Shown here: in pieces, positions 125 to 39,629 of the stretch
Position numbering within the stretch: position 1 is the first letter of the stretch
How the letters are laid out: each line of letters starts with the position of its first letter
Assembly: GCA_965644495.1 (NCBI GenBank)
Contig: CBFFSA010000010.1
Location: forward strand, 434,001-498,000
DNA length: 64,000 nt
Direction of reading: 5' to 3'
Source: Perkinsela sp. CCAP 1560/9
Lineage: Eukaryota > Protista > Euglenozoa: Kinetoplastea
Notes under the pieces: generated by a model
Databases searched by the model: none
What the model saw: the letters and a program-made list of their open reading frames with translations, nothing else
Told to the model about the DNA's origin: nothing
Translations under genes and position numbers: made by a program

Positions 125-631
125 CTATCGGGGGCATACAAATGTATGTCTTGGACTGAGTCTCCGTCCCGGGCCGTAGTGTGGGGAGGGCTGGCGACGT
201 TGGGCGCGGTCGCAATGCCCTCCAAGATCGTCTCGCTGGCCAGTGGGGTGGCCCGCCCTTGGAGGGGGATTTCTATGGCGGCGTCCCGGGTTGGCTTCAA
301 TGTAGCCCCTGCGCAGGTTGCACTTGATTATATGGGCGGACCGTCCTGTTTCGCTGATGAGGGATTCGGAAGATAAGAAGCTCCATAAAATCCCGTCCTC
401 GTATTCCTTGGGCTTCCAAGCTACGGTTAGGATATCGAGAATTCCTATTTGTTTGCTGAGGAAGGCAGGGATAACATGTGCGGCTCCTATGCCCGGCGCT
501 AAGAGGCTGCCTTGGAATGTACCGTCGTACACTCGTATTGCTTTGGTGTCGATGTATCCTGTGCTGCCTGGTGGTAGGGTCAGGCGTACAGAGATCCTTT
601 GGGCGCATTTTGTTGTTGTTTTTTCATGCAC
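125..631 (-). mobile_element. N-terminal ORF of an SL-headed non-LTR retroelement, with a degenerate 2A-like motif (LRRGYIEANPGR); the element probably continues beyond the window start
   Basis: Lies downstream (minus strand) of the SL copy at 1224-1248 and the structured leader at 900-1223. About 65 aa align with the 5750-5960 copy, and similarity ends at NPG. Confidence 0.6.
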
Positions 632-721
632 TTATAGTGCAGAGATTTGCCTCACTACATGTCCTTACCCCGCATACGACGGGTGGATCACGTGAGAGTT
701 CGCCTTCGCCTGTGGCAAGAG

Positions 722-888
722 GGTGCAGAGAGCTGGCGTCCCAGGTGCAGAGAGCTCGGTTGTCATGTGCAGGTGCAGAGAGCCGGATGCGTAATCCCCA
801 TATTACAGTTTCGGGGGCAATCCGGGTGAAGAGAGCTGCGACAGAGCCGAGGTGCGGAGAGCTGGGTGACCGCCAGGTGCGGAGAGCC
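722..888 (-). repeat. Six irregularly spaced GCTCTC(T/C)GCACC motifs (one variant) in the retroelement 5' UTR
   Basis: GGTGC(A/G)GAGAGC on the + strand at about 722, 744, 772, 826 (variant), 851 and 876. Confidence 0.75.
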
Positions 889-899
889 GGAAGTCGTAG

Positions 900-1223
900 C
901 GAAGGACACGTCTAGTGGTCCTCAAGGGAGGCCACCGTGACGCATTGCCTCCTCGGAAAGGTAGACACGAGAAAGAAAAGCCGAGAGAGGGAAGCACACT
1001 CACTCCAGGAGAGTGAGTCGGGGAGGGGCGAAGGGTGAAAGGCGCGTCCCCTGCTTCAACGAAAAGAGGGACAGTCCCGACCTTAGTGCCGGGGAGGGGT
1101 GATGGGGTAGAAGCGCGTCCCCTACTTCGCCGAGAAAGAGGAACAGTTTCAGCCTTAGTGCCGGCCGGCAACGGGCATATGAACAGTTAGACTATGCCCG
1201 TTGCCGGGGAAAGAAAGGATGAA
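900..1223 (-). ncRNA. Structured SL-adjacent leader RNA, copy 1
   Basis: Perfect 15-bp inverted repeat at 1165-1179/1193-1207. Blocks shared with 38511-38760 (GGGACTGTCCCTCTTT, GAAGTAGGGGAC, GGTGGCCTCCCTTGAGGACCACT). Confidence 0.7.
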
Positions 1224-1260
1224 CAACAAGGTACAGAAACTGTATCTTGTACAGAAACTC
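1224..1260 (-). ncRNA. Spliced-leader exon remnant (3' 25 nt), preceded by a partial duplicate of the core (AGTTTCTGTAC)
   Basis: The reverse complement of 1224-1248 is AAGATACAGTTTCTGTACCTTGTTG, matching the kinetoplastid/diplonemid SL core CAGTTTCTGTA...TTG. Confidence 0.8.
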
Positions 1261-3740
1261 TCCCGATCTGTAATGTGGGTCACTTCCCCAGATGTGTCCT
1301 TGAGGAGTAGGCTCTCGTCGGGCACCCCAATGGTATACCCCACGATCCCCAGGATGTCTGAAAAGGAGGTTGAAGCTTCGCAAGGAACTCGAATTCGTCC
1401 GGCCCGTTCGGGGCCAAGGTCTAGGGTAATGAGTATACCTTCGCCCCGTAATCCAGGGGGCTGCCCTCCTCGGGCGCGTAAATTGGCGCGAAGCTATGCG
1501 GGTGTGATCCTGGATCTGGTCCCGGTGTAGGGTTAAAGTGGAAGGCAGGGGTGTGGAAGTGGTGCTGTGGAGGTAGAGAAGTGGTGCTGTGGAGGCCATG
1601 GAGGATTTGCTTCGAGAGTGGGGAATCCTGCTGTAGGGAGTTGCGCTGCCACGAAGAAACATTCTTTGAAGAGGCTCAGGAACTCCGACCAGCCTTCTCG
1701 TTTGAGGGCGTAGGCGCCCCGGGCATGACTTCCCAAAAGTTCGTACAATGCTTTCCGAGTGCGCTTCGGGGCGTGTACGTTTAGGATGTGGGCCTGCAGG
1801 CCTATGAGGTGTTGATGTGCGGCTCCCCAGAATGTCTGAAAAAGAGGTTAATGCGTCACATGCAGACCAGTTGGGTAGCCGTTGGGGCTTTCCCTAACGC
1901 GGCCTCACAGAGGTTGCGTGGGGCTGCTCGTTGGCTTACATGCCCTGGGGTCGGCCCTGTAGGGCGTTCTTCACCTTGGCCTGCATGCCCTCGGCCTTGT
2001 GCTCGAAGGGGATGGTCCCCAGGAAATCTGCCGTCAAGAGGTGATTGGAAAACGGTATTTTTCCCAAGGAGTCCATCCCCCGGAGCAATGCCTCAGCACA
2101 TGCCAGGACGGCTGTGCCGACTTGGGCATCGGCCACTTTAGTGACCCGGGGCTCGTGGGTCCTTACGATGTAGTTCCATCGAGGACTCCCACAGAGTCTT
2201 AAGAGGGGCAAGATACACTGCCAGCTACTGTCCTTAAGTTTCCCCAAGAAGGAGATTACCTTCGGCGCCTTGGAGAGCACCCATTCTTCTTCCCTAGCCT
2301 AACCTAGCCTCCCTAGCCTAGGGCTTCCGCGCATACCTTGGGTTCACCCGCGAAGGTGACGCCGTCCAGGTACGCCCAGACCTTCAGCGTGCCTGTGAAG
2401 TTGGCCGCCACTCTGGCAATTGCCCCCTGGATCCCTATGGCAAATAGGATGGGAGCCATGGGGTCACCTTGCTTGACCCCACTTGAGTTCGTGATGGATT
2501 GGCCTTCCCCAAGGTGAAGCGTACGTGTAGTACCGTAGCTGAAGAGGGTGATGCCCTCAATGCGGAAAAGTTTCGGATCCCCCCTTACCGCCCTAAAAAT
2601 TGCCGACCGTGAGATGCTATTAAAAGCGTTCTCGAGGTCTGCCGCCACGATGACCTCCTTCGGCCTGTCCCTGAAGTGCTGTCGCACATTATAAATTATG
2701 TGCTCACACCCCTGCGTGTATTGGGCTCCAAACTGGATGCCCTGAAAGCAAGTGGGGAGATGTTCCCGGATTTTCTCCAGGCAAGGAGCCCCGCCACCTT
2801 GAGGACGCACTCTCCCATGGCGATGGGCCTGTAGGAAGAGTGGTGCCCCGCCGGGGAGTCCGGTTTGGTGAATAGTTTTAGGGACGCCCCCGTGAGCCGT
2901 TCCCTCATTGAGGGGAGTAGGGAGTTTGTCATAATCCCGTGGATTATCCACGTGATACAGTCGCAGGGTCCACCTTCCATGAGGACTGGGACAAGCAGTT
3001 CCTTGGTCCATCCCGTAGGTCCGGGGGGCGCGGATAGGGGCCAGGCTTGGGGCCTTCCTGGCCACATCGGCGGGGGAGGGTAGGGTTCCGTGTCGGTCCC
3101 TATTGTACCTGAATTTCCCCGCAATGTAGGGCCCGCCTGTGGGATGTAGTCGCTTAGCCTGTTCTAGGGCCGCCGTGGGATTGGCCGGTGGATTGAGGGG
3201 CGCCTCCATCGTTTTGGCCGTCCTAGAGAAGCAACCCGCCCTGCACAATTCCTCCACCCGTTTTTTGACGGACCACGGGGGGCCGTTGGCCTGACTCGGG
3301 GATGGAGCCAAGGTCTTCGAACTTATTCAGAGTTCGCGTGCTAGCTGTCGTTGCAACTCCGCCTATCCTCAGGGAGGTGTAGGAAACGTTTTACGGCTAA
3401 AAGGAGGTTCCAGGCCATCTCAACTTTGTCCCCCCCTGACTTATTGAGAAAGTCATGACATACACTGGCAGTGTATTCCTTCCATGCCGGGCATTGGACC
3501 GCGTAAAGTTTACTCGGGGACCCCCTCCCAAGAAGCTCCGCTAAGCTCTCGGAGGAGGGGGCTTGCCCACGCTTCTCAATTGGAGCGCCCTGGGCTATTG
3601 GGGTGGTTTGCTGGCCTTCTGTAATGCGAGATGATTCCACCATCACCGATGACCCCTTATCTAATGTCGTCCGTTGGGGAGTGCCGGTGACATTTGCTTC
3701 CGCCGCGATGGCTGGCTTCCGGCATACCCCCCCAGAGCAG
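1261..3740 (-). mobile_element. Degenerate, 5'-truncated CRE/SLACS/CZAR-like non-LTR retrotransposon (RT plus probable RLE remnant)
   Basis: RT motifs YRPIAMGE, QFG, AADLENAFNSISR, GVKQGDPMAPILF and AYLDG (YLDD decayed) are split over frameshifted ORFs 2313-3311 and 2696-3124. LLRLCGSPRWNYIVRTH follows in 1936-2280. The 3' end abuts the SL remnant. Confidence 0.85.
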
Positions 3741-33137: not shown

Positions 33138-33510
33138 TTGTATAAGTACAATTTGCCCTATGCATTTTTTGGCCGTCATCCTCATTTCACAAACACTTCC
33201 GGGAGCTCAACGTCACGTGCGGCAAAGGTAAGGGGCGCATTTCTTCCACAGGAATACGAACTTGAAAAGTTTATTAGCGATGTCGAAAGCCCACATGAGT
33301 CGTCGAGCACTGCCACACCTGCATATGCGTGGGATGGAGTGGTAGGCAATGACGAGGGGGAAGTTATTGTCATTGCTTGGTATGGTCGAAAATTGTGTGG
33401 GACATTGCATTGGGAACATACACGATCTGTAAAACGTTTGGATGTTTCCAACAATGCGTTGAGTGGCACTGTCGATTTTTCTTTATTGCCTCGAAGTTTG
33501 GAGAGATTAT
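33138..33510 (+). pseudogene. LRR gene truncated at the SL/retroelement junction
   Basis: AKVRGAFLPQEYEL motif, cap and one LRR, ending at LPRSLERL|. Confidence 0.88.
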
Positions 33511-33590
33511 AAAGATCATAAAGATTATAAAGATTTATAATGATTATACTTATAATCATACTTATAAAGATTATAAAGATCATAAAGATA
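33508..33590 (+). repeat. Reiterated (T/C)ATAAAGAT units derived from the SL 5' edge
   Basis: TTATAAAGATCATAAAGATTATAAAGAT...; the last unit runs into the SL core. Confidence 0.85.
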
Positions 33591-33609
33591 CAGTTTCTGT
33601 ACCTTGTTG
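33584..33609 (+). ncRNA. SL exon remnant at the 5' boundary of the retroelement
   Basis: AAAGATACAGTTTCTGTACCTTGTTG. Confidence 0.82.
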
Positions 33610-33616
33610 TCTTTTG

Positions 33617-33640
33617 TACTAACTGTTATCACCCCTACAG
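33617..33640 (+). promoter_or_regulatory. Putative branch point and 3' splice acceptor immediately before the retroelement ATG
   Basis: TACTAAC at 33617-33623, CCCCTACAG ending at 33640 and ATG at 33645. Confidence 0.5.
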
Positions 33641-33644
33641 GGGC

Positions 33645-36600
33645 ATGTCACTCCACACCACTACCTCTGCCCCCCAGGCGCAAGGCGACCTCCCTCGAGG
33701 ATCTGCTGGCGCAAAACCTTCACGCAAGCATACCTTCAACTTCACACAAAAAAGTGCGATTTCTGTAAAAATAAGACACTCAACTTCCACATCATGGCTC
33801 TATTTCCCTGACATCCACGCGGCGGCTTGTTTTCTAACCAAGAAGAGGCACTTCAATGCCGAAATTTCAGCGGAACTTTCCTTAGCACGAACCCTTGAAA
33901 CAGGAGCAAAGCGGTCTGATGGTATATTAGTAGAAAAATGCACTTTACAAGACGTAATGAACGAGGAAGCATGCGAACATTTCGTATTCCGCGAAATTGC
34001 ACCGCCACACAGGATATTCCGGCACACTAGCTGGGCGACAGCACACGCAGACGCATCTCTACAGCTAGATAAACAGTACTCTTGTCCTGGAACCCTTGGA
34101 CGCACCATCAAGAAGAAACTGGCTGGGAACAACATCTCGGGACTTGCGGCGTTCGACCTAACCCACGTCCACACTAAGGAAGTACACGATGAAGGCTCTT
34201 GGGAAAAGGCTCTTGGGAGAACTAGGATTGAGTACGGCGAACCTTTCCTGATCGGGAAGCCCAACCAGGCGGCGGGACAAGGAACGCGGACAGTGCGGCA
34301 ACAACCTTGTGCCCACCGCTGCTTGAATAAACGCACCTGTCTCCACCCGTGTTGCAAAGTTGGGATGGAACCCGAGCTCACCAACAATCGTCCAGAGGAA
34401 CCGGGTGGCCACGCACCAAACAGAAGTCATCCGCTGCCTCGTACAACGGACGAACCAACCCCCAACCACGAAGCTCGACCCAGCCGTACTCAACCGTGTG
34501 CTCATCGATGTTTGAACAAGCGCATATGCCTCCACCAATGTTGCAAGATCAGTATTGACCCCGAACCTATGGACCACCCCTCACCTCACCCAGATATGCA
34601 GAGAGCAGATAGTGCAATCCAAAAGTCTGATGCCAGGCCTGATGCTACACCATGGCTTCGAGATGAACAAACGTCTAGCACATGCGCGACACCTCGACGA
34701 TCATGTAAACACATTTGCCAAAACAAGCAACAATGTAAGCACATGTGTTGCAAGATTGGGGTAAAGATCGACCCTAGAAGACTTGAATCCCTAAACGAAG
34801 AAACAACAGTAATTGCCACCCCTCCCTCACCCGCCCCACGCACTCAGACACCGCCAGACAGAAATCTGCATCACATAACAACGTCGGAAGAACAAGAACT
34901 CTCGCGCAGGCCCTGCAAGCACGTATGCCGCAACAAGGCCGAATGCAAACACCAATGTTGTAAGGAGGGAGTACTCAGCCCCCCTCAGGACGCTCGGCAG
35001 GAACCCACCCGCTGGAGCCTACGCAACCTCTTCTCGTGGAATCTGTCTAACAACGAGACAAACGGACAAGCACCTGCTGGTCACAGCGAAAGATCCGCAT
35101 CTTCTGAGCCCCAAAGACAGGTAGAAACCAAAATAGGCGCCGCACGGAGTTCACCACGAGATCAGCGCCACGAAAGACGCTTCACAAATGCCTCCGAAGA
35201 AACCCGCATCAATCAGTCTCCACGACAACCAGCACATCCACCGGTGAACAACGTAACCTCGGAACCAGCGCCAACCTTCGGAACTGAAAGTAACACACAG
35301 ACGCTTACCCAGACTCTCCCACCGCGGGGCGGACCACGGCAGACCCACGGGCCGAATGACAGCACGATCCTGAACTCACAGAGGAATAGATCTCGAAATG
35401 AAAACATATTAGACACCGAGACGGCTGAATACTTGTTAAGCACCATGCGTACGATCGAAGGAGGGCGGGTCATGATAAGCCTCTCACAGGACCAATGGCA
35501 GCTGGCAATAAAGAAGGCCATGGATAGATGTAAAAAGTACTTAAAGCCTGCATCAACCCCGAGCGAAGCCCTACTACATACGGAATTACTGACAGCTTGC
35601 ATGGCGGTCTCGGTTTATGAAGTTGTACGGGAACTCGACCCCACCAAAGGGTTCAAATTGCGCTCCAAAATTGGCCATGCGAAACGCCCCACACGACCCC
35701 TTAGCTATGACCGCTCTGCGAAGCAACTAGCAGGACACATCCGTCAACTGAAACGTACTCTTTCCTTTACCCACGGACGCTCAGAAAGGGACCGCTTGAT
35801 CGGCAACATAAAAGAAGCGACCAAAGCGCATAAGCTGTACACGGAAGAAGCGAAACTAGTCAAACAAGAACGAGAGAAACGCTGGATGATGGACAGGTTC
35901 CAAAGAAACCCTTGGACAGCAGCCGGAGAGTGTCTTGACAAGAACGAGCAACTGGTAAATCAGCCGGCAACCTTTCCAGACTGCTCGCAAGCAGCTATCG
36001 AAACATTTTTCCAAGAATTGTTAAGCACAGACACGGAAGATCATAGTCTACCTCCAACAAACCTCCTTGGCCTGGATCTAGAGAATGCAATGGAATGGGA
36101 AGCAATCGACGTACCAACCATAGCAGTGGCAATCTCCTCGAAACGCCCCTCGGCTGCCCCAGGCTCCGATACCGTGGGAAACGCATTTCTTCGACGCTGC
36201 GAAGAGCTCTACCCGTTCATCGCGCAAGTCTTCAATGACGTACTGAAGCATTCGGTCAGCCCTCCCTATTGGAAACAGGCCGTCACCCGACTCATTCACA
36301 AAGGCGGAGCTCCCAACCAATTGTCCAACTGGAGACCCATCAGTCTTACGAGCTGCCTTGGTAAGTTACTCCACTCCATTATTGGCCACAGAATCTTGAG
36401 CCATGCTGTGACGACAGGAATAATTGACACAACCATACAAAAAGGATTTTTGCCAAACGTAAATGGAACTATCGAGCATACCCAGTCACTCTGTGAACTA
36501 TTGGACTTTCAACGACAGCATAAACGACAATACTGCCTTGGTCAATTTGACTTAAAGAACGCGTTTGGTTCTCTCCCACACTCCATTCTCTTTCAAGTCC

Positions 36601-38369
36601 TAACGTGGGCAAATGTATCACCTCAAATCATCGCGTACATCCGCTCCCTATACCATGATGCGACTATCCGGATCAAATGTTCGGAAGGGCTGACCCAACA
36701 CATCCCCGTCAAACGAGGTGTTCTCCAGGGCGACACACTATCCCCCGTACTATTCAATCTCGCCATAGAAGTGGTTCTACGACATCTCCGATCGAGCTTC
36801 CCTAGCTATGGTATTAAATGGGGCAACCAAGAGTCGTTCTTAAAAGCCTTTGCAGACGATCTGGCTATCATCACGAACTCGGCTGAAAAAATGCAACACG
36901 TGACGAACGCCCTGATGAACATGCTTTCCAGGTTAGGCATGCGCCTTAACGTACCGAAATGTCGTCTCCAACACATGTCTGTAGCAGAAGGCGGATATAA
37001 GACCCACAGACCCCGTATCTTGGCATACGGTGAGAGTATTCCCAACGTTTGCGACAAAGGAAGTCAGTTCCTAGGTATGACACTCGCGCCGGGGACCCAA
37101 CAAGGGAAAGTACTGTTCAAAAGTCTCCTAAAGCAGCTACGATTTTGGTTGAACAATGTATCCAATAGTGCCCTAGATACCCCCGCTCGTCTCTGGGCCT
37201 ATAATAACGTAATCATATCTCGCCTGCGATATGTGCTCACGGTCAATCCAGGAATGACACTAAACTTTATCCTTCGACTACAAAAATATGCGACGAGACA
37301 CATTCGAAAATGGATAAACATGGCCAAAACAGCTACGAGCGAAGTTCTGTACTCTGAACGCGGCTGGGCTCTCACCAGCCTGTCTAAGCTTTGGTTACTC
37401 TGCACAGGCACAGCAGTTGAACAGATGAAAAAATCTCGTGATCCAGCAGTGCAACAAGCGCTGAGATATCGCATCCGTCGTGAACACGACAAACGTTCTT
37501 CCGGACAAGTGCGACCAGTCGTCGAGTTGTACGACCGCAGTGGAAATCACGCATCGACACGGCAGTACATTGAACATGAATACGAAAGACATCTCTCAGA
37601 AGCTGTGCAGCGTCGAGCACCAATCGCGGGGCAGTGGTTTCGCATGGCTACAGAAGACGACCTCGCGAAAGACTTCGCTGCTGCTCTGTGCAATATTAAA
37701 AGTACGTCGCTCTCCAGACTTGCTTCATCTGTTCTGACACAGACACCGCTTCCGACCCGATCCGCCTTACACCGCTGGGGCCTCAGTTACCACACGAACC
37801 GTAAATGCCCCATTTGCTCAGAAGACGTACAAACTGTGCGCCACGTTCTAACAGGCTGCAAGGCCGCCCTGCAACAGGGGCGGTATACCTTCCGTCACAA
37901 CCTCATTCTACACGCCCTTGCAGATGCTATTCGACAATCCCCCGAAACCGCACAGTATCACTTTGACCTCGCTCACCATCAGAATCCGCCAACCTGGCTG
38001 AGCGGGCAAGAAACGTCCCTCCGACCTGATGGATGGGTCCAACTTAAGAACGGTTCTGAGTTCATACTAGAACTGACATCTCCGTGGGAGGAAAACTTTA
38101 TCTCCTCACACGAACGGAAGATGCAGAAGTATGGACATATGTATCTACAACGGAAAATGTCGAACCCAGCCACTTTTCTCCTGGCCATTGAAGTAGGTGC
38201 CAGAGGAAAGCTCAACAGCTCAACTCGAGCACTGAACTCCCTTTTTGGTGGAAACAAGACCACCGCCTCGCGATGTCGTCAGCATATGGTAACAAGAGCC
38301 CTTAGTGGCAGTTTCAAAATTTTTAATAATCGCGGCATTGAGCAGTGGAGTGAGGGCACGTGCTGGTGA
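33645..38369 (+). mobile_element. Intact single-ORF RLE-type non-LTR retrotransposon (HERO/NeSL-like): 4 Cys/His fingers, RT, CCHC and restriction-like endonuclease. The element spans ~33610-38470.
   Basis: NWRPISL, QKGF, DLKNAFGSLPH, GVLQGDTLSPVLF, AFADDL, CPIC...HVLTGC, GRYTFRHN, LRPD, ELTSPWEEN, RKMQKY and IEVGARG. The first 35 aa of the track ORF are translated repeat and SL sequence. Confidence 0.95.
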
Positions 38370-38470
38370 AGAGTTTTAAAAACCTAGGAGAAACTCGTTT
38401 TGTGCAAGGATTGCGTGCTAGTCATGCATCTTCTAGGTATCAATCTCTGCAGGTAAACTGCATGAATCAA

Positions 38471-38510
38471 AAAGATACAGTTTCTGCACCATGTTGGTAC
38501 ATTTTGCTAG
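38471..38510 (+). ncRNA. SL exon remnant plus a 14-nt GT...AG spacer
   Basis: AAAGATACAGTTTCTGCACCATGTTG|GTACATTTTGCTAG; TTG|GTA matches the SL exon/intron junction. Confidence 0.82.
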
Positions 38511-38760
38511 TCCTTCCTTTCTTTTCCCGGAAACGGGCACACATTTTCTCTTTAAATGCCCGTTTCCGGCTGACGGCTAGCAGGGACTGTCCCTCTTTGT
38601 CGTGGAAGTAGGGGACGTACTTTCGACTTTTCACCCCTCCCCGGCTCACTCCTTCAGTGAGTTTTCTTCCCTCCCGGGCCTTTCTTCCTTTCACGCCTTT
38701 CCTTCCCGGGGAGCCATGCGCCATGGTGGCCTCCCTTGAGGACCACTGGGCGTGGCTCTG
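38511..38760 (+). ncRNA. Structured SL-adjacent leader RNA, copy 2
   Basis: Perfect 13-bp stem at 38527-38539/38557-38569, plus three more hairpins homologous to 900-1223. Confidence 0.72.
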
Positions 38761-38783
38761 CCTCGTCTTATCGCGAGGCAGCG

Positions 38784-38926
38784 GTCGGTTGCAGTGCGCC
38801 CCACCGGCTGCGTAAAGAGGTGGTGAGTTGCCTGGACCACCTCTACCGACTGGGGCCGAGTCGGTTGCAGTACGCCCCTCCGGCTGCGTAAAAAGAGGGC
38901 GAGTTACCCGGACCCCCTCTACCGAC
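38784..38926 (+). repeat. Two structured 67-nt units (76-bp period)
   Basis: GTCGGTTGCAGT...GGCTGCGTAAA...TCTACCGAC at 38784-38850 and 38860-38926. Confidence 0.8.
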
Positions 38927-39029
38927 AGAGTCCGTGCCGAATTCTCCTTCGTGCGACGTCTGTTGTGAGCGGGTCATGTGCCGATGATATCGGCCGTCGC
39001 ATCAAGGGCTGTATCTCTGCGTCAATGAG

Positions 39030-39119
39030 CGCATGAACATCAACAAGATGCCATCAAATGTGTTTAGCGGGGAATTACAAGTACATTTCGAGCATCTTCC
39101 AACTGGGGTCACTATACTA
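39030..39119 (+). pseudogene. Short LRR fragment ending at an SL remnant
   Basis: SNVFSGELQVHFEHLPTGVTIL|. Confidence 0.5.
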
Positions 39120-39250
39120 AAAGATACAATTCCTGTACCTTGTTGCTCATCCTTTCTTTTCCCAGAAACAGGCATACTCTTAGCCTTTTATGTATGTCCG
39201 TTTCCGGCCGGCACTAGGGCCGGAAACTCATCTTTCCGTTGAAGAGGGGC
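39120..39250 (+). ncRNA. SL remnant (39120-39145) fused directly to a degenerate leader, copy 3
   Basis: AAAGATACAATTCCTGTACCTTGTTG|CTCATCCTTTCTTTTCCCAGAAAC...CCGGCCGGCACTA. Confidence 0.78.
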
Positions 39251-39629
39251 CGCCGCTTCGCACCCACGCGCAGCGCGTCAGACGCGCCGAGTGCCCCCGC
39301 TGGATGGACGCCGGGGAGAGCCTCTCAACGACGCTGTGTAGCCGAAAGGCTTCTTGCAGCCTCTCAACGACGCCCCCCCGCAGTGGAAGTTCAGTGCCCC
39401 CTTCACCCCCCCAGGCGCTGCAGGACCTCCCTTGACCACGCGGCGTGGTCGAATCCCTGCGTACGACCGGCGTTGAATGCGCTGTAATGGTCGTTGATAA
39501 CGGTCGTCGTACGACAGGAAGATGCTCTGCCGGCTCGCCCGGTATGAAAGTGAAAGGAATGGATGTGGCAAAGTGTCAATTCAGTGGTTTCGTGTATCTT
39601 TCGTGTCTTCAGCATTCGGCGCTTCCTCG

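Follow-up and report, generated by a model that had tools for sequence, protein, structure and literature searches.

Long and short heads of a spliced-leader-bearing SINE in Perkinsela sp. point to retroposition of trans-spliced RNA

A 64,000-nucleotide (nt) stretch of Perkinsela sp. CCAP 1560/9 (contig CBFFSA010000010.1, positions 434,001 to 498,000 of the forward strand; hereafter the window, with positions counted from its first letter) harbors three copies of a non-coding repeat of about 450-600 nt without a long open reading frame (ORF), here named SINE-A (SINE, short interspersed element), each of them headed by a relic of the spliced leader (SL). Genome-wide, SINE-A occurs in two classes, namely long copies, in which a short block opening with GTAC and closing with AG separates the SL from the body, and short copies, in which exactly this block is missing, the final G of the SL being followed at once by the base that comes after the AG. 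The short copies are most probably retroposed SL-trans-spliced SINE-A RNA within a family mobilized by an R2-type long interspersed element (LINE), a reading to which we assign a probability of roughly 0.77.

Re-reading of the three copies confirmed what the earlier note had described in the window, with copy 2 keeping the block between TTG and the body and copies 1 and 3 having the SL joined directly to it. A three-way alignment left the 14-nt block as the sole difference among the heads, and its limits, as that note had also stated, are exactly GT and AG (Table 1). Copy 2 begins right at the 3' tail of an upstream LINE, which its relic SL adjoins; the AG of its module lies at 38509-38510, its body contains a 13-bp hairpin at about 38527-38539 / 38557-38569, and its 3' stem-loop (ATCTCTGC..GCATGA..CAA) starts at 39013. 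Copy 1, on the minus strand, has a body beginning with TTCATCC at 1223 and an additional partial SL piece (AGTTTCTGTAC) immediately upstream of its relic (about 1259-1249). The body of copy 3 is 91-93% identical to those of three long-form relatives of subfamily E (L001, L114, and L116), the 15-nt module of which is absent from copy 3. An SL 20-mer allowed three or fewer mismatches matched four window sites against 0.01 expected, and the fourth of these (33590-33609), absent from the earlier list, heads a LINE. In general, the SINE-A head comprises a 5'-truncated SL followed by the module (GTAC, a pyrimidine tract, and AG, 14-17 nt in all), and the body opens with a strong hairpin of 13-15 bp, the arms of which covary between subfamilies (GGAAAC/GTTTCC versus GGCAAC/GTTGCC), and ends with ATCTC, a 5-bp stem-loop, TGA, and a short A-rich tail.

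The leader in these heads is the organism's genuine SL, because its sequence is the same as the exon found in two tandem SL RNA genes at G000:C1:661k and in an SL RNA gene on an unrelated metagenome contig (L120, positions 1-80; Ga0316204_10168667). In both tandem genes the exon is 38 nt long, begins AACTTTAACG, and ends CCTTGTTG, and the intron begins GTATGAGAAG (GTATGAG) and continues into stem-loops. The metagenome contig, which matches these genes over all 38 nt of the exon and at the intron start but differs from them upstream and downstream, is from an environmental relative of the window organism. In the 21-Mb assembly, the SL 20-mer gave 549 matches at one mismatch or fewer and the reversed control none. 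In a probable RNA set, the SL headed only a contig of another gene, a point in favor of the reading given above. The two tandem genes, which a 5S ribosomal RNA gene adjoins (99 bits, L051 2232-2350), are the only promoter-bearing SL RNA genes in the assembly and are both uninterrupted; their small number suggests that the SL array is collapsed or missing there. No Rfam model matches the SL RNA of this organism. The nearest named proteins to the PRP43 helicase encoded in the window come from the prokinetoplastid transcriptomes PhM-4 and PhF-6 (52% identity), and the host is accordingly placed among deep-branching protists of kinetoplastid type.

For the genome-wide tally of the two junction classes proposed in the earlier note, pattern searches of the assembly were anchored on the SL and the body hairpin, with a spacer of 23-45 nt defining long and one of 6-22 nt defining short heads. 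These searches recovered 86 long heads with an intact SL 12-mer and 19 shorter ones, the control pattern recovering none, and a search ignoring the SL brought the long heads to about 100 overall. Exact AG-bounded junctions were present in 16 of the 19 shorter heads and in one further copy with a mutated SL, giving a total of 17-18, or about one copy in seven. The module measures 14, 15, 16, or 17 nt depending on the subfamily and reads GTACATTTTGCTAG, GTACATTTTCC(C)TTTAG, GTACTTTTTCCTTAG, GTACTTTTTTTCCTAG, GTACATTTTYCCTAG, or GTACTTAACCTTAG in the long heads (see INDEPENDENCE). Every subfamily has retained the GTAC and the AG, which nearly all long copies show, and the tract between them varies and stays pyrimidine-rich, the whole resembling a splice acceptor. 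The short copies begin their bodies with CCCTTCC (three copies, subfamily A), TTCATCT (three, B), TTCATCC (nine, C), TTAATCC (two, C'), or CTCATCC (one, E). These starts are diagnostic of five subfamilies, and despite the differing modules of their long relatives the cut always falls after TTG and after AG. The short share is about 9% in A, about 9% in B, 26% in C, none of eight in D, and one of five in E.

The loss of the block was recurrent. In a tree built from 330 nt of the body with the head excluded (the tree and the relic-length statistics below cover 93 heads), the short copies were scattered, and well-supported branches force at least six origins for 17 of them. Many short copies were separated by only 0-0.003 changes per site from a long sibling, and short copies never formed an expanding clade; the sole all-short pair (L046 and L048) has a common upstream flank and is probably one locus assembled twice. 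With about 16 possible end points, at least six independent AG-exact events among about 11 independent events starting at TTG correspond to a binomial P of 2e-5. Since the loss is exact, recurrent (at least six origins), and AG-bounded, with microhomology of a single nucleotide (G) flanking the block, it points to RNA splicing, unlike a deletion. This genomic pattern, spread over five subfamilies and module lengths of 14-17 nt, supports the earlier proposal that the block-less copies are retrocopies of RNA spliced at that AG. A loss without any splicing, through DNA deletion, replication slippage, or reverse-transcriptase template switching, would fit the other small deletions seen in the heads (GTAC alone, one G, GTTG, or 8-13 nt with non-AG ends) and the template switching within the SL that is evident from one junction shared by four SINE bodies (see below), but it would have to strike the same two boundaries in at least six independent events and at four block lengths with that single G of microhomology. 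The recurrence statistics disfavor such a loss, which we consider extremely improbable.

Given splicing, the length of the block argues for SL trans-splicing rather than cis-splicing. The block has the GT..AG borders of a cis-spliced spliceosomal intron, but its 14-17 nt are incompatible with the cis-introns of the lineage, which in Kinetoplastea number three per genome, lie in three genes, and have medians of 440-3350 nt as far as known (PMC11613528); the earlier judgment that 14 nt is too short for ordinary cis-splicing is borne out by these medians. The same comparison bears on the idea that the relic donor of the element itself is used, either as a cis mini-intron of 14-17 nt or in trans-splicing between two element RNAs, without a genuine SL RNA. 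The GT..AG borders would agree with this idea, as would the identical relic lengths in both classes, as if the short form inherited the relic of its parent, although identical lengths would equally result from a retroposition machinery that fixes where the 5' end of every RNA falls. Considering further that the element lacks the rest of the SL RNA (the intron stem-loops of the real gene) and that such an intron would be far below the kinetoplastid medians, use of the relic donor appears very unlikely.

Under the preferred reading, the replicating DNA form of SINE-A would consist of an SL copy (usually its last ~27-29 nt), the GTAC/pyrimidine/AG module, and the structured body. Its transcript would be trans-spliced at the module AG by the SL machinery of the cell, everything upstream being exchanged for a fresh SL, and the LINE machinery would then reverse-transcribe the spliced RNA, leaving the SL against the first base after the AG as in copies 1 and 3. 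Copy 2 would stem from RNA left unspliced at the module AG, and short copies would arise repeatedly from long lineages and not amplify themselves. What the DNA shows directly is the existence of the two classes, the exactness and recurrence of their boundaries, and the relationship of LINE and SINE; the removal of the block by trans-splicing with genuine SL RNA as donor and the copying by the LINE enzyme are inferred. In one clear case of stacking (L083), a new SL is joined after ACAG inside an older relic, indicating that re-splicing of relic-bearing transcripts, as read from this junction, does occur. The extra partial SL pieces of copy 1 and L001 do not fit this rule of an AG inside the relic.

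The probable source of the copying machinery is the LINE directly upstream of copy 2. Its ORF (33540-38369, with the likely start ATG at 33645) encodes a reverse transcriptase (RT) domain (RVT_1, 2.8e-31), a CCHC motif at amino acid 1423, and the endonuclease motif RPD..ExK at amino acid 1495; its best named homologue is R2, and its top matches lack an AP-endonuclease (APE) domain. On the basis of these features the LINE is assigned to the R2 type. The LINE and the SINEs have in common the 3' end ATCTC-stem-loop-TGA..CAAAA, the 5-bp stem of which covaries (TGCAG/CTGCA, TGCGC/GCGCA, and TGCAC/GTGCA), and the LINE at 33582-38472 probably mobilizes the SINE-A family. The SINE-A head does not derive from an RNA polymerase III (Pol III) small RNA (tRNA, 7SL, or 5S), the SL and the module standing in that place, and Rfam searches of the window gave no match at gathering thresholds, nor a relevant one over 33500-39500 when E<=1 was allowed. 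The flanks of the LINE and SINE copies are unrelated to one another, their insertions being dispersed, and no consistent target-site duplications were found among the copies. Moreover, the LINE head that follows the relic SL (33610-33647) contains GTACTAAC, a perfect yeast-type branch-point box, followed by pyrimidine-rich sequence, a CAG, and the ATG at 33645 (in frame), and would be a second acceptor-like module; the AG of this module is absent from one LINE copy (L030).

Several observations weigh against the proposed route. None of the contig sets compared with 33500-39499, four of unknown kind and one of probable RNA, displayed use of the module AG or was informative on it. Relic SL length is the same in both classes (median 27 nt, Mann-Whitney P = 0.57; mode 28, range 8-38 nt), and the short copies do not carry a visibly longer, fresh SL; only L041 among them may have the full SL, and the full 38 nt occur in one long copy (L111). 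It seems that the retroposition machinery, and not the history of the RNA, sets the 5' end about 10 nt into the SL. Furthermore, a minority of the heads are joined elsewhere than at the AG (the caret marks the junction): TTG^AG.., two bases early, TTG^CCTTAG.., and TTG^TTTCCTAT.. were seen, together with loss of GTAC only in two copies and loss of one G (TTG^TAC) in eight. Small losses within the SL also occur, e.g., CCTT^GTAC. Heterogeneous junctions of the kind that the earlier note had set against its own reading amount only to this minority, that is, about five odd junctions plus the G-less TAC class. Because the LINE itself has SL junctions at varying positions that lack a preceding AG, some SL junctions in the genome are not splice products and have come about by other routes such as template switching or deletion. 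In addition, an assembly search for the module and hairpin, whatever lies upstream, found no SL-less master copies, and no element lies inside a promoter-bearing SL RNA gene in the assembly. Finally, the route does not account for how the long-form RNA gains or keeps an SL upstream of an acceptor that was not used. Candidate sources of this SL are a master copy missing from the assembly (resembling SL RNA or having an upstream acceptor), read-through transcription of dispersed copies with the 5' end set during integration, and template switching within the SL.

The candidate with an upstream acceptor leads to a different account, in which an SL-less master gene has two alternative acceptors, a major AG just before GTAC that gives the long form and a minor AG 14-17 nt downstream that gives the short form. 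In that case the long form would be a spliced fossil as well, with GTA following the SL by chance, and copy 2, which the earlier note called unspliced, does keep its AG module but may itself be a transcript spliced at the upstream acceptor of a master gene missing from the assembly. In trypanosomatids, a gene commonly offers more than one AG in succession as acceptor for trans-splicing. The occurrence of short copies next to long siblings at 9-26% by subfamily is as expected for a constant minor splice choice, and the full 38-nt SL of L111 indicates that a long-form RNA can begin at SL nt 1. Also, with only two SL RNA genes assembled, repeat arrays and master copies may be missing. On the other side, the SL stands directly before GTAC in every long head (~100 of ~100), and a non-SL ..AG at that place was not found in any copy by the assembly search. 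Moreover, the chance of GTA coinciding with the first three intron bases is 1/64, and GGTAC(A) can pair with (T)GTACC of the SL, rebuilding the top of the real stem-loop I of the SL RNA, which holds the splice donor. On balance, a master gene with two acceptors is unlikely.

Regarding the origin of GTAC, comparison of the head with the true SL intron showed that only the first 3 nt (GTA) are common to GTAC and GTATGAG, the match ending there. The suggestion that copy 2 keeps the SL donor GTA is therefore plausible in view of the GGTAC pairing and of retrocopies of unspliced SL RNA, but tentative given a match of 3 nt to the intron start. Five or six such retrocopies of complete SL RNA are present in the genome (L050 and L053-L057; Table 1), comprising the exon and ~62 nt of intron followed by a short A run; one of them (L050) ends 12 nt into the intron and is fused to other sequence. 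Their first 2-4 bases are garbled, possibly due to cap-4 nucleotides, and several of them lead into GGAGGTGGCGGAGTGGG-type repeats. Descent of the head from SL RNA is plausible in the light of these retrocopies and of the pairing. GTAC may instead belong to an acceptor module, since LINE heads contain GTACTAAC, a branch-point-like sequence, at a variable distance from the SL.

Combining these elements, the head may tentatively be regarded as a portable trans-splicing cassette from SL RNA, consisting of the SL exon with the 3-4 bases that open the intron, by which the stem-loop I top and its splice donor would be preserved, and of the branch/pyrimidine/AG acceptor of the element; this is a possibility rather than the expected outcome. 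If it holds, each transcript would either stay intact and replicate or be SL-trans-spliced into a capped dead end, and use of the splice site (9-26% by subfamily) would be recorded in the genome as fossils that can be counted. Moreover, the ~100 scattered modules combining a donor and an acceptor could provide host genes with new SL acceptors and SL-homology recombination points, which is where the earlier note's proposed mechanism for new SL targets might apply.

Exchange within the SL is also visible at other junctions. Four SINE-A bodies (L036, L038, L091, and L096) from three subfamilies, two of them long and two short, are preceded by the same junction of a repeat X (>800 nt, ..GCAACACCCT) with SL nt 20, and X does not resume after the SINE; this common junction looks like the product of template switching or recombination within the SL. 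In two further copies, L075 (G000:C12:200.7k) and L104 (G000:C5:475.4-476.0k), SINE-A lies within the relic SL of a different SL-headed element and has a duplicated target, which measures ~34 nt in L075, where it includes a full variant SL, and 9 nt in L104; these occasional insertions hint at a residual preference for SL sequence.

Table 1. Coordinates of the SINE-A copies and the LINE in the window, and of SL RNA genes and retrocopies in the assembly
Feature	Position	Strand	Remarks
Copy 1 (short form), relic SL	1224-1248	-	25 nt, joined straight to body
Copy 1, body, subfamily C	609-1223	-	3' stem-loop from 646 downward; 3' end approximate
Copy 2 (long form), relic SL	38471-38496	+	SL nt 13-38, 2 mismatches, ends TTG
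Copy 2, 14-nt module GTACATTTTGCTAG	38497-38510	+	GTAC, pyrimidine-rich tract, and AG; missing from short copies
Copy 2, body, subfamily A-like	38511-39046	+	First bases TCCTTCC
Copy 3 (short form), relic SL	39120-39145	+	26 nt, 2 mismatches, joined straight to body
Copy 3, body, subfamily E	39146-39565	+	First bases CTCATCC; 3' end approximate
R2-like LINE	33582-38472	+	4.9 kb; relic SL head 28 nt (33582-33609)
Two tandem SL RNA genes	G000:C1:661k		297 bp apart; common upstream region, exon, and intron
SL RNA retrocopies (L050, L053-L057)	G000:C1:410102, C2:801599, C20:10944, C25:23935, C49:34386, C86:12044		

Further observations concern the surroundings of these elements. Directly upstream of the relic SL of the LINE lie tandem ATAAAGAT(Y)-like units (33507-33590), and the relic itself begins ATAAAGAT. 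Duplicated TAAAGA pieces precede other copies too (L027, L082, L109, and L115), and such duplicated units at the 5' junction may reflect stuttering of the reverse transcriptase. A second RT fragment (RVT_1, 2e-9) was detected near copy 1 at 2313-3311 on the minus strand, and several SINE flanks resemble leucine-rich-repeat coding sequence (..TTTAGTGG..). Elsewhere, SL-headed units with a nearly full SL, often right behind a poly(A) run, were found at G000:C1:2477648-2492926 and in L009-L018. These units include a 5,093-bp tandem array and have 5' untranslated regions of 23-42 nt and ORFs of 100-490 amino acids, two of which contain LGSWDQFAANK.

Relict SLs are the classic evidence for recycled cDNAs in dinoflagellates. 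If the same signature holds in a deep-branching kinetoplastid-type genome, SL trans-splicing and retroposition would interact in Euglenozoa too, and a relic SL would serve as a built-in tag for retroposed sequences in this group. Likewise, paired long and short sister copies would offer a rare genomic read-out of the usage of one defined acceptor, and the SL-associated R2-type LINEs of trypanosomatids would be linked to a dispersed, SL-carrying lifestyle. In text searches of the open literature, SL-headed retroposons from Euglenozoa did not turn up, although these searches covered one library and are not proof of novelty. In addition, a metagenome scan for the full SL followed by GTAC gave no matches, and a shorter SL pattern led to the SL RNA gene of one relative and to no element.

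Retrocopies and chimeras derived from small nuclear and other small RNAs are known from U6-L1 chimeras and SINEU. The complete unspliced SL RNA retrocopies found here are similar, especially the one that breaks off after 12 nt of intron and continues into other sequence, and a fusion of this kind, with the SL and 3-4 intron bases retained, could have given rise to the SINE head. This likeness is limited by the fact that only GTA(C) is common with the intron, and derivation from SL RNA rather than from a trans-spliced mRNA is tentative. Like other LINE-dependent SINEs, SINE-A is short, non-coding, and multi-copy, forms subfamilies, shows variable 5' truncation, and has a covarying 3' stem-loop in common with its LINE. 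Unlike the typical members of that class, however, its head is not tRNA, 7SL, or 5S with an internal Pol III promoter but an SL, that is, the exon of a small RNA made by RNA polymerase II, with an acceptor-like module.

The relics commonly start at about SL nt 11, which is as far from the exon end as the insertion site of CRE/SLACS elements. The idea that the 28-nt relic marks a CRE cleavage site was set aside, as the relic starts are spread over about nt 8-14 of the SL and the tails over 8-38 nt, some of the starts being fixed by target microhomology (L117). LINEs specific to SL genes comprise CRE1/CRE2, SLACS, and CZAR of trypanosomatids and NeSL-1 of nematodes (PMC12278014, PMC3636483). The LINE described here is related to this group: it belongs to the R2 superfamily, combines an RT, a CCHC motif, and a restriction-like endonuclease motif, and is physically linked to the SL. 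Whereas those elements occupy one fixed position within SL RNA genes, neither SL RNA gene is interrupted here and the copies are dispersed, the SL forming the 5' end of the element and part of the copied RNA.

Relict SLs of dinoflagellate (and Perkinsus) retrogenes were reportedly described by Slamovits and Keeling in 2008. The likeness to dinoflagellate relict SLs (reviewed in PMC6050394) drawn in the earlier note is apt, and the L083 junction, with its new SL after an AG inside an old relic, adds to it. In both cases a DNA copy of the organism's own SL would mark sequence copied back from trans-spliced RNA, and the SL is joined where the precursor has an AG acceptor, as seen in the 17-18 short copies in comparison with their long sisters. 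Here, however, the genome is of kinetoplastid type, and the SL is carried not by host genes but by a LINE/SINE pair and other repeats. Furthermore, re-splicing would take place at the element's own pyrimidine-AG module downstream of the relic, the relic being replaced and not stacked, and the spliced and unspliced forms coexist as sister copies in one genome.
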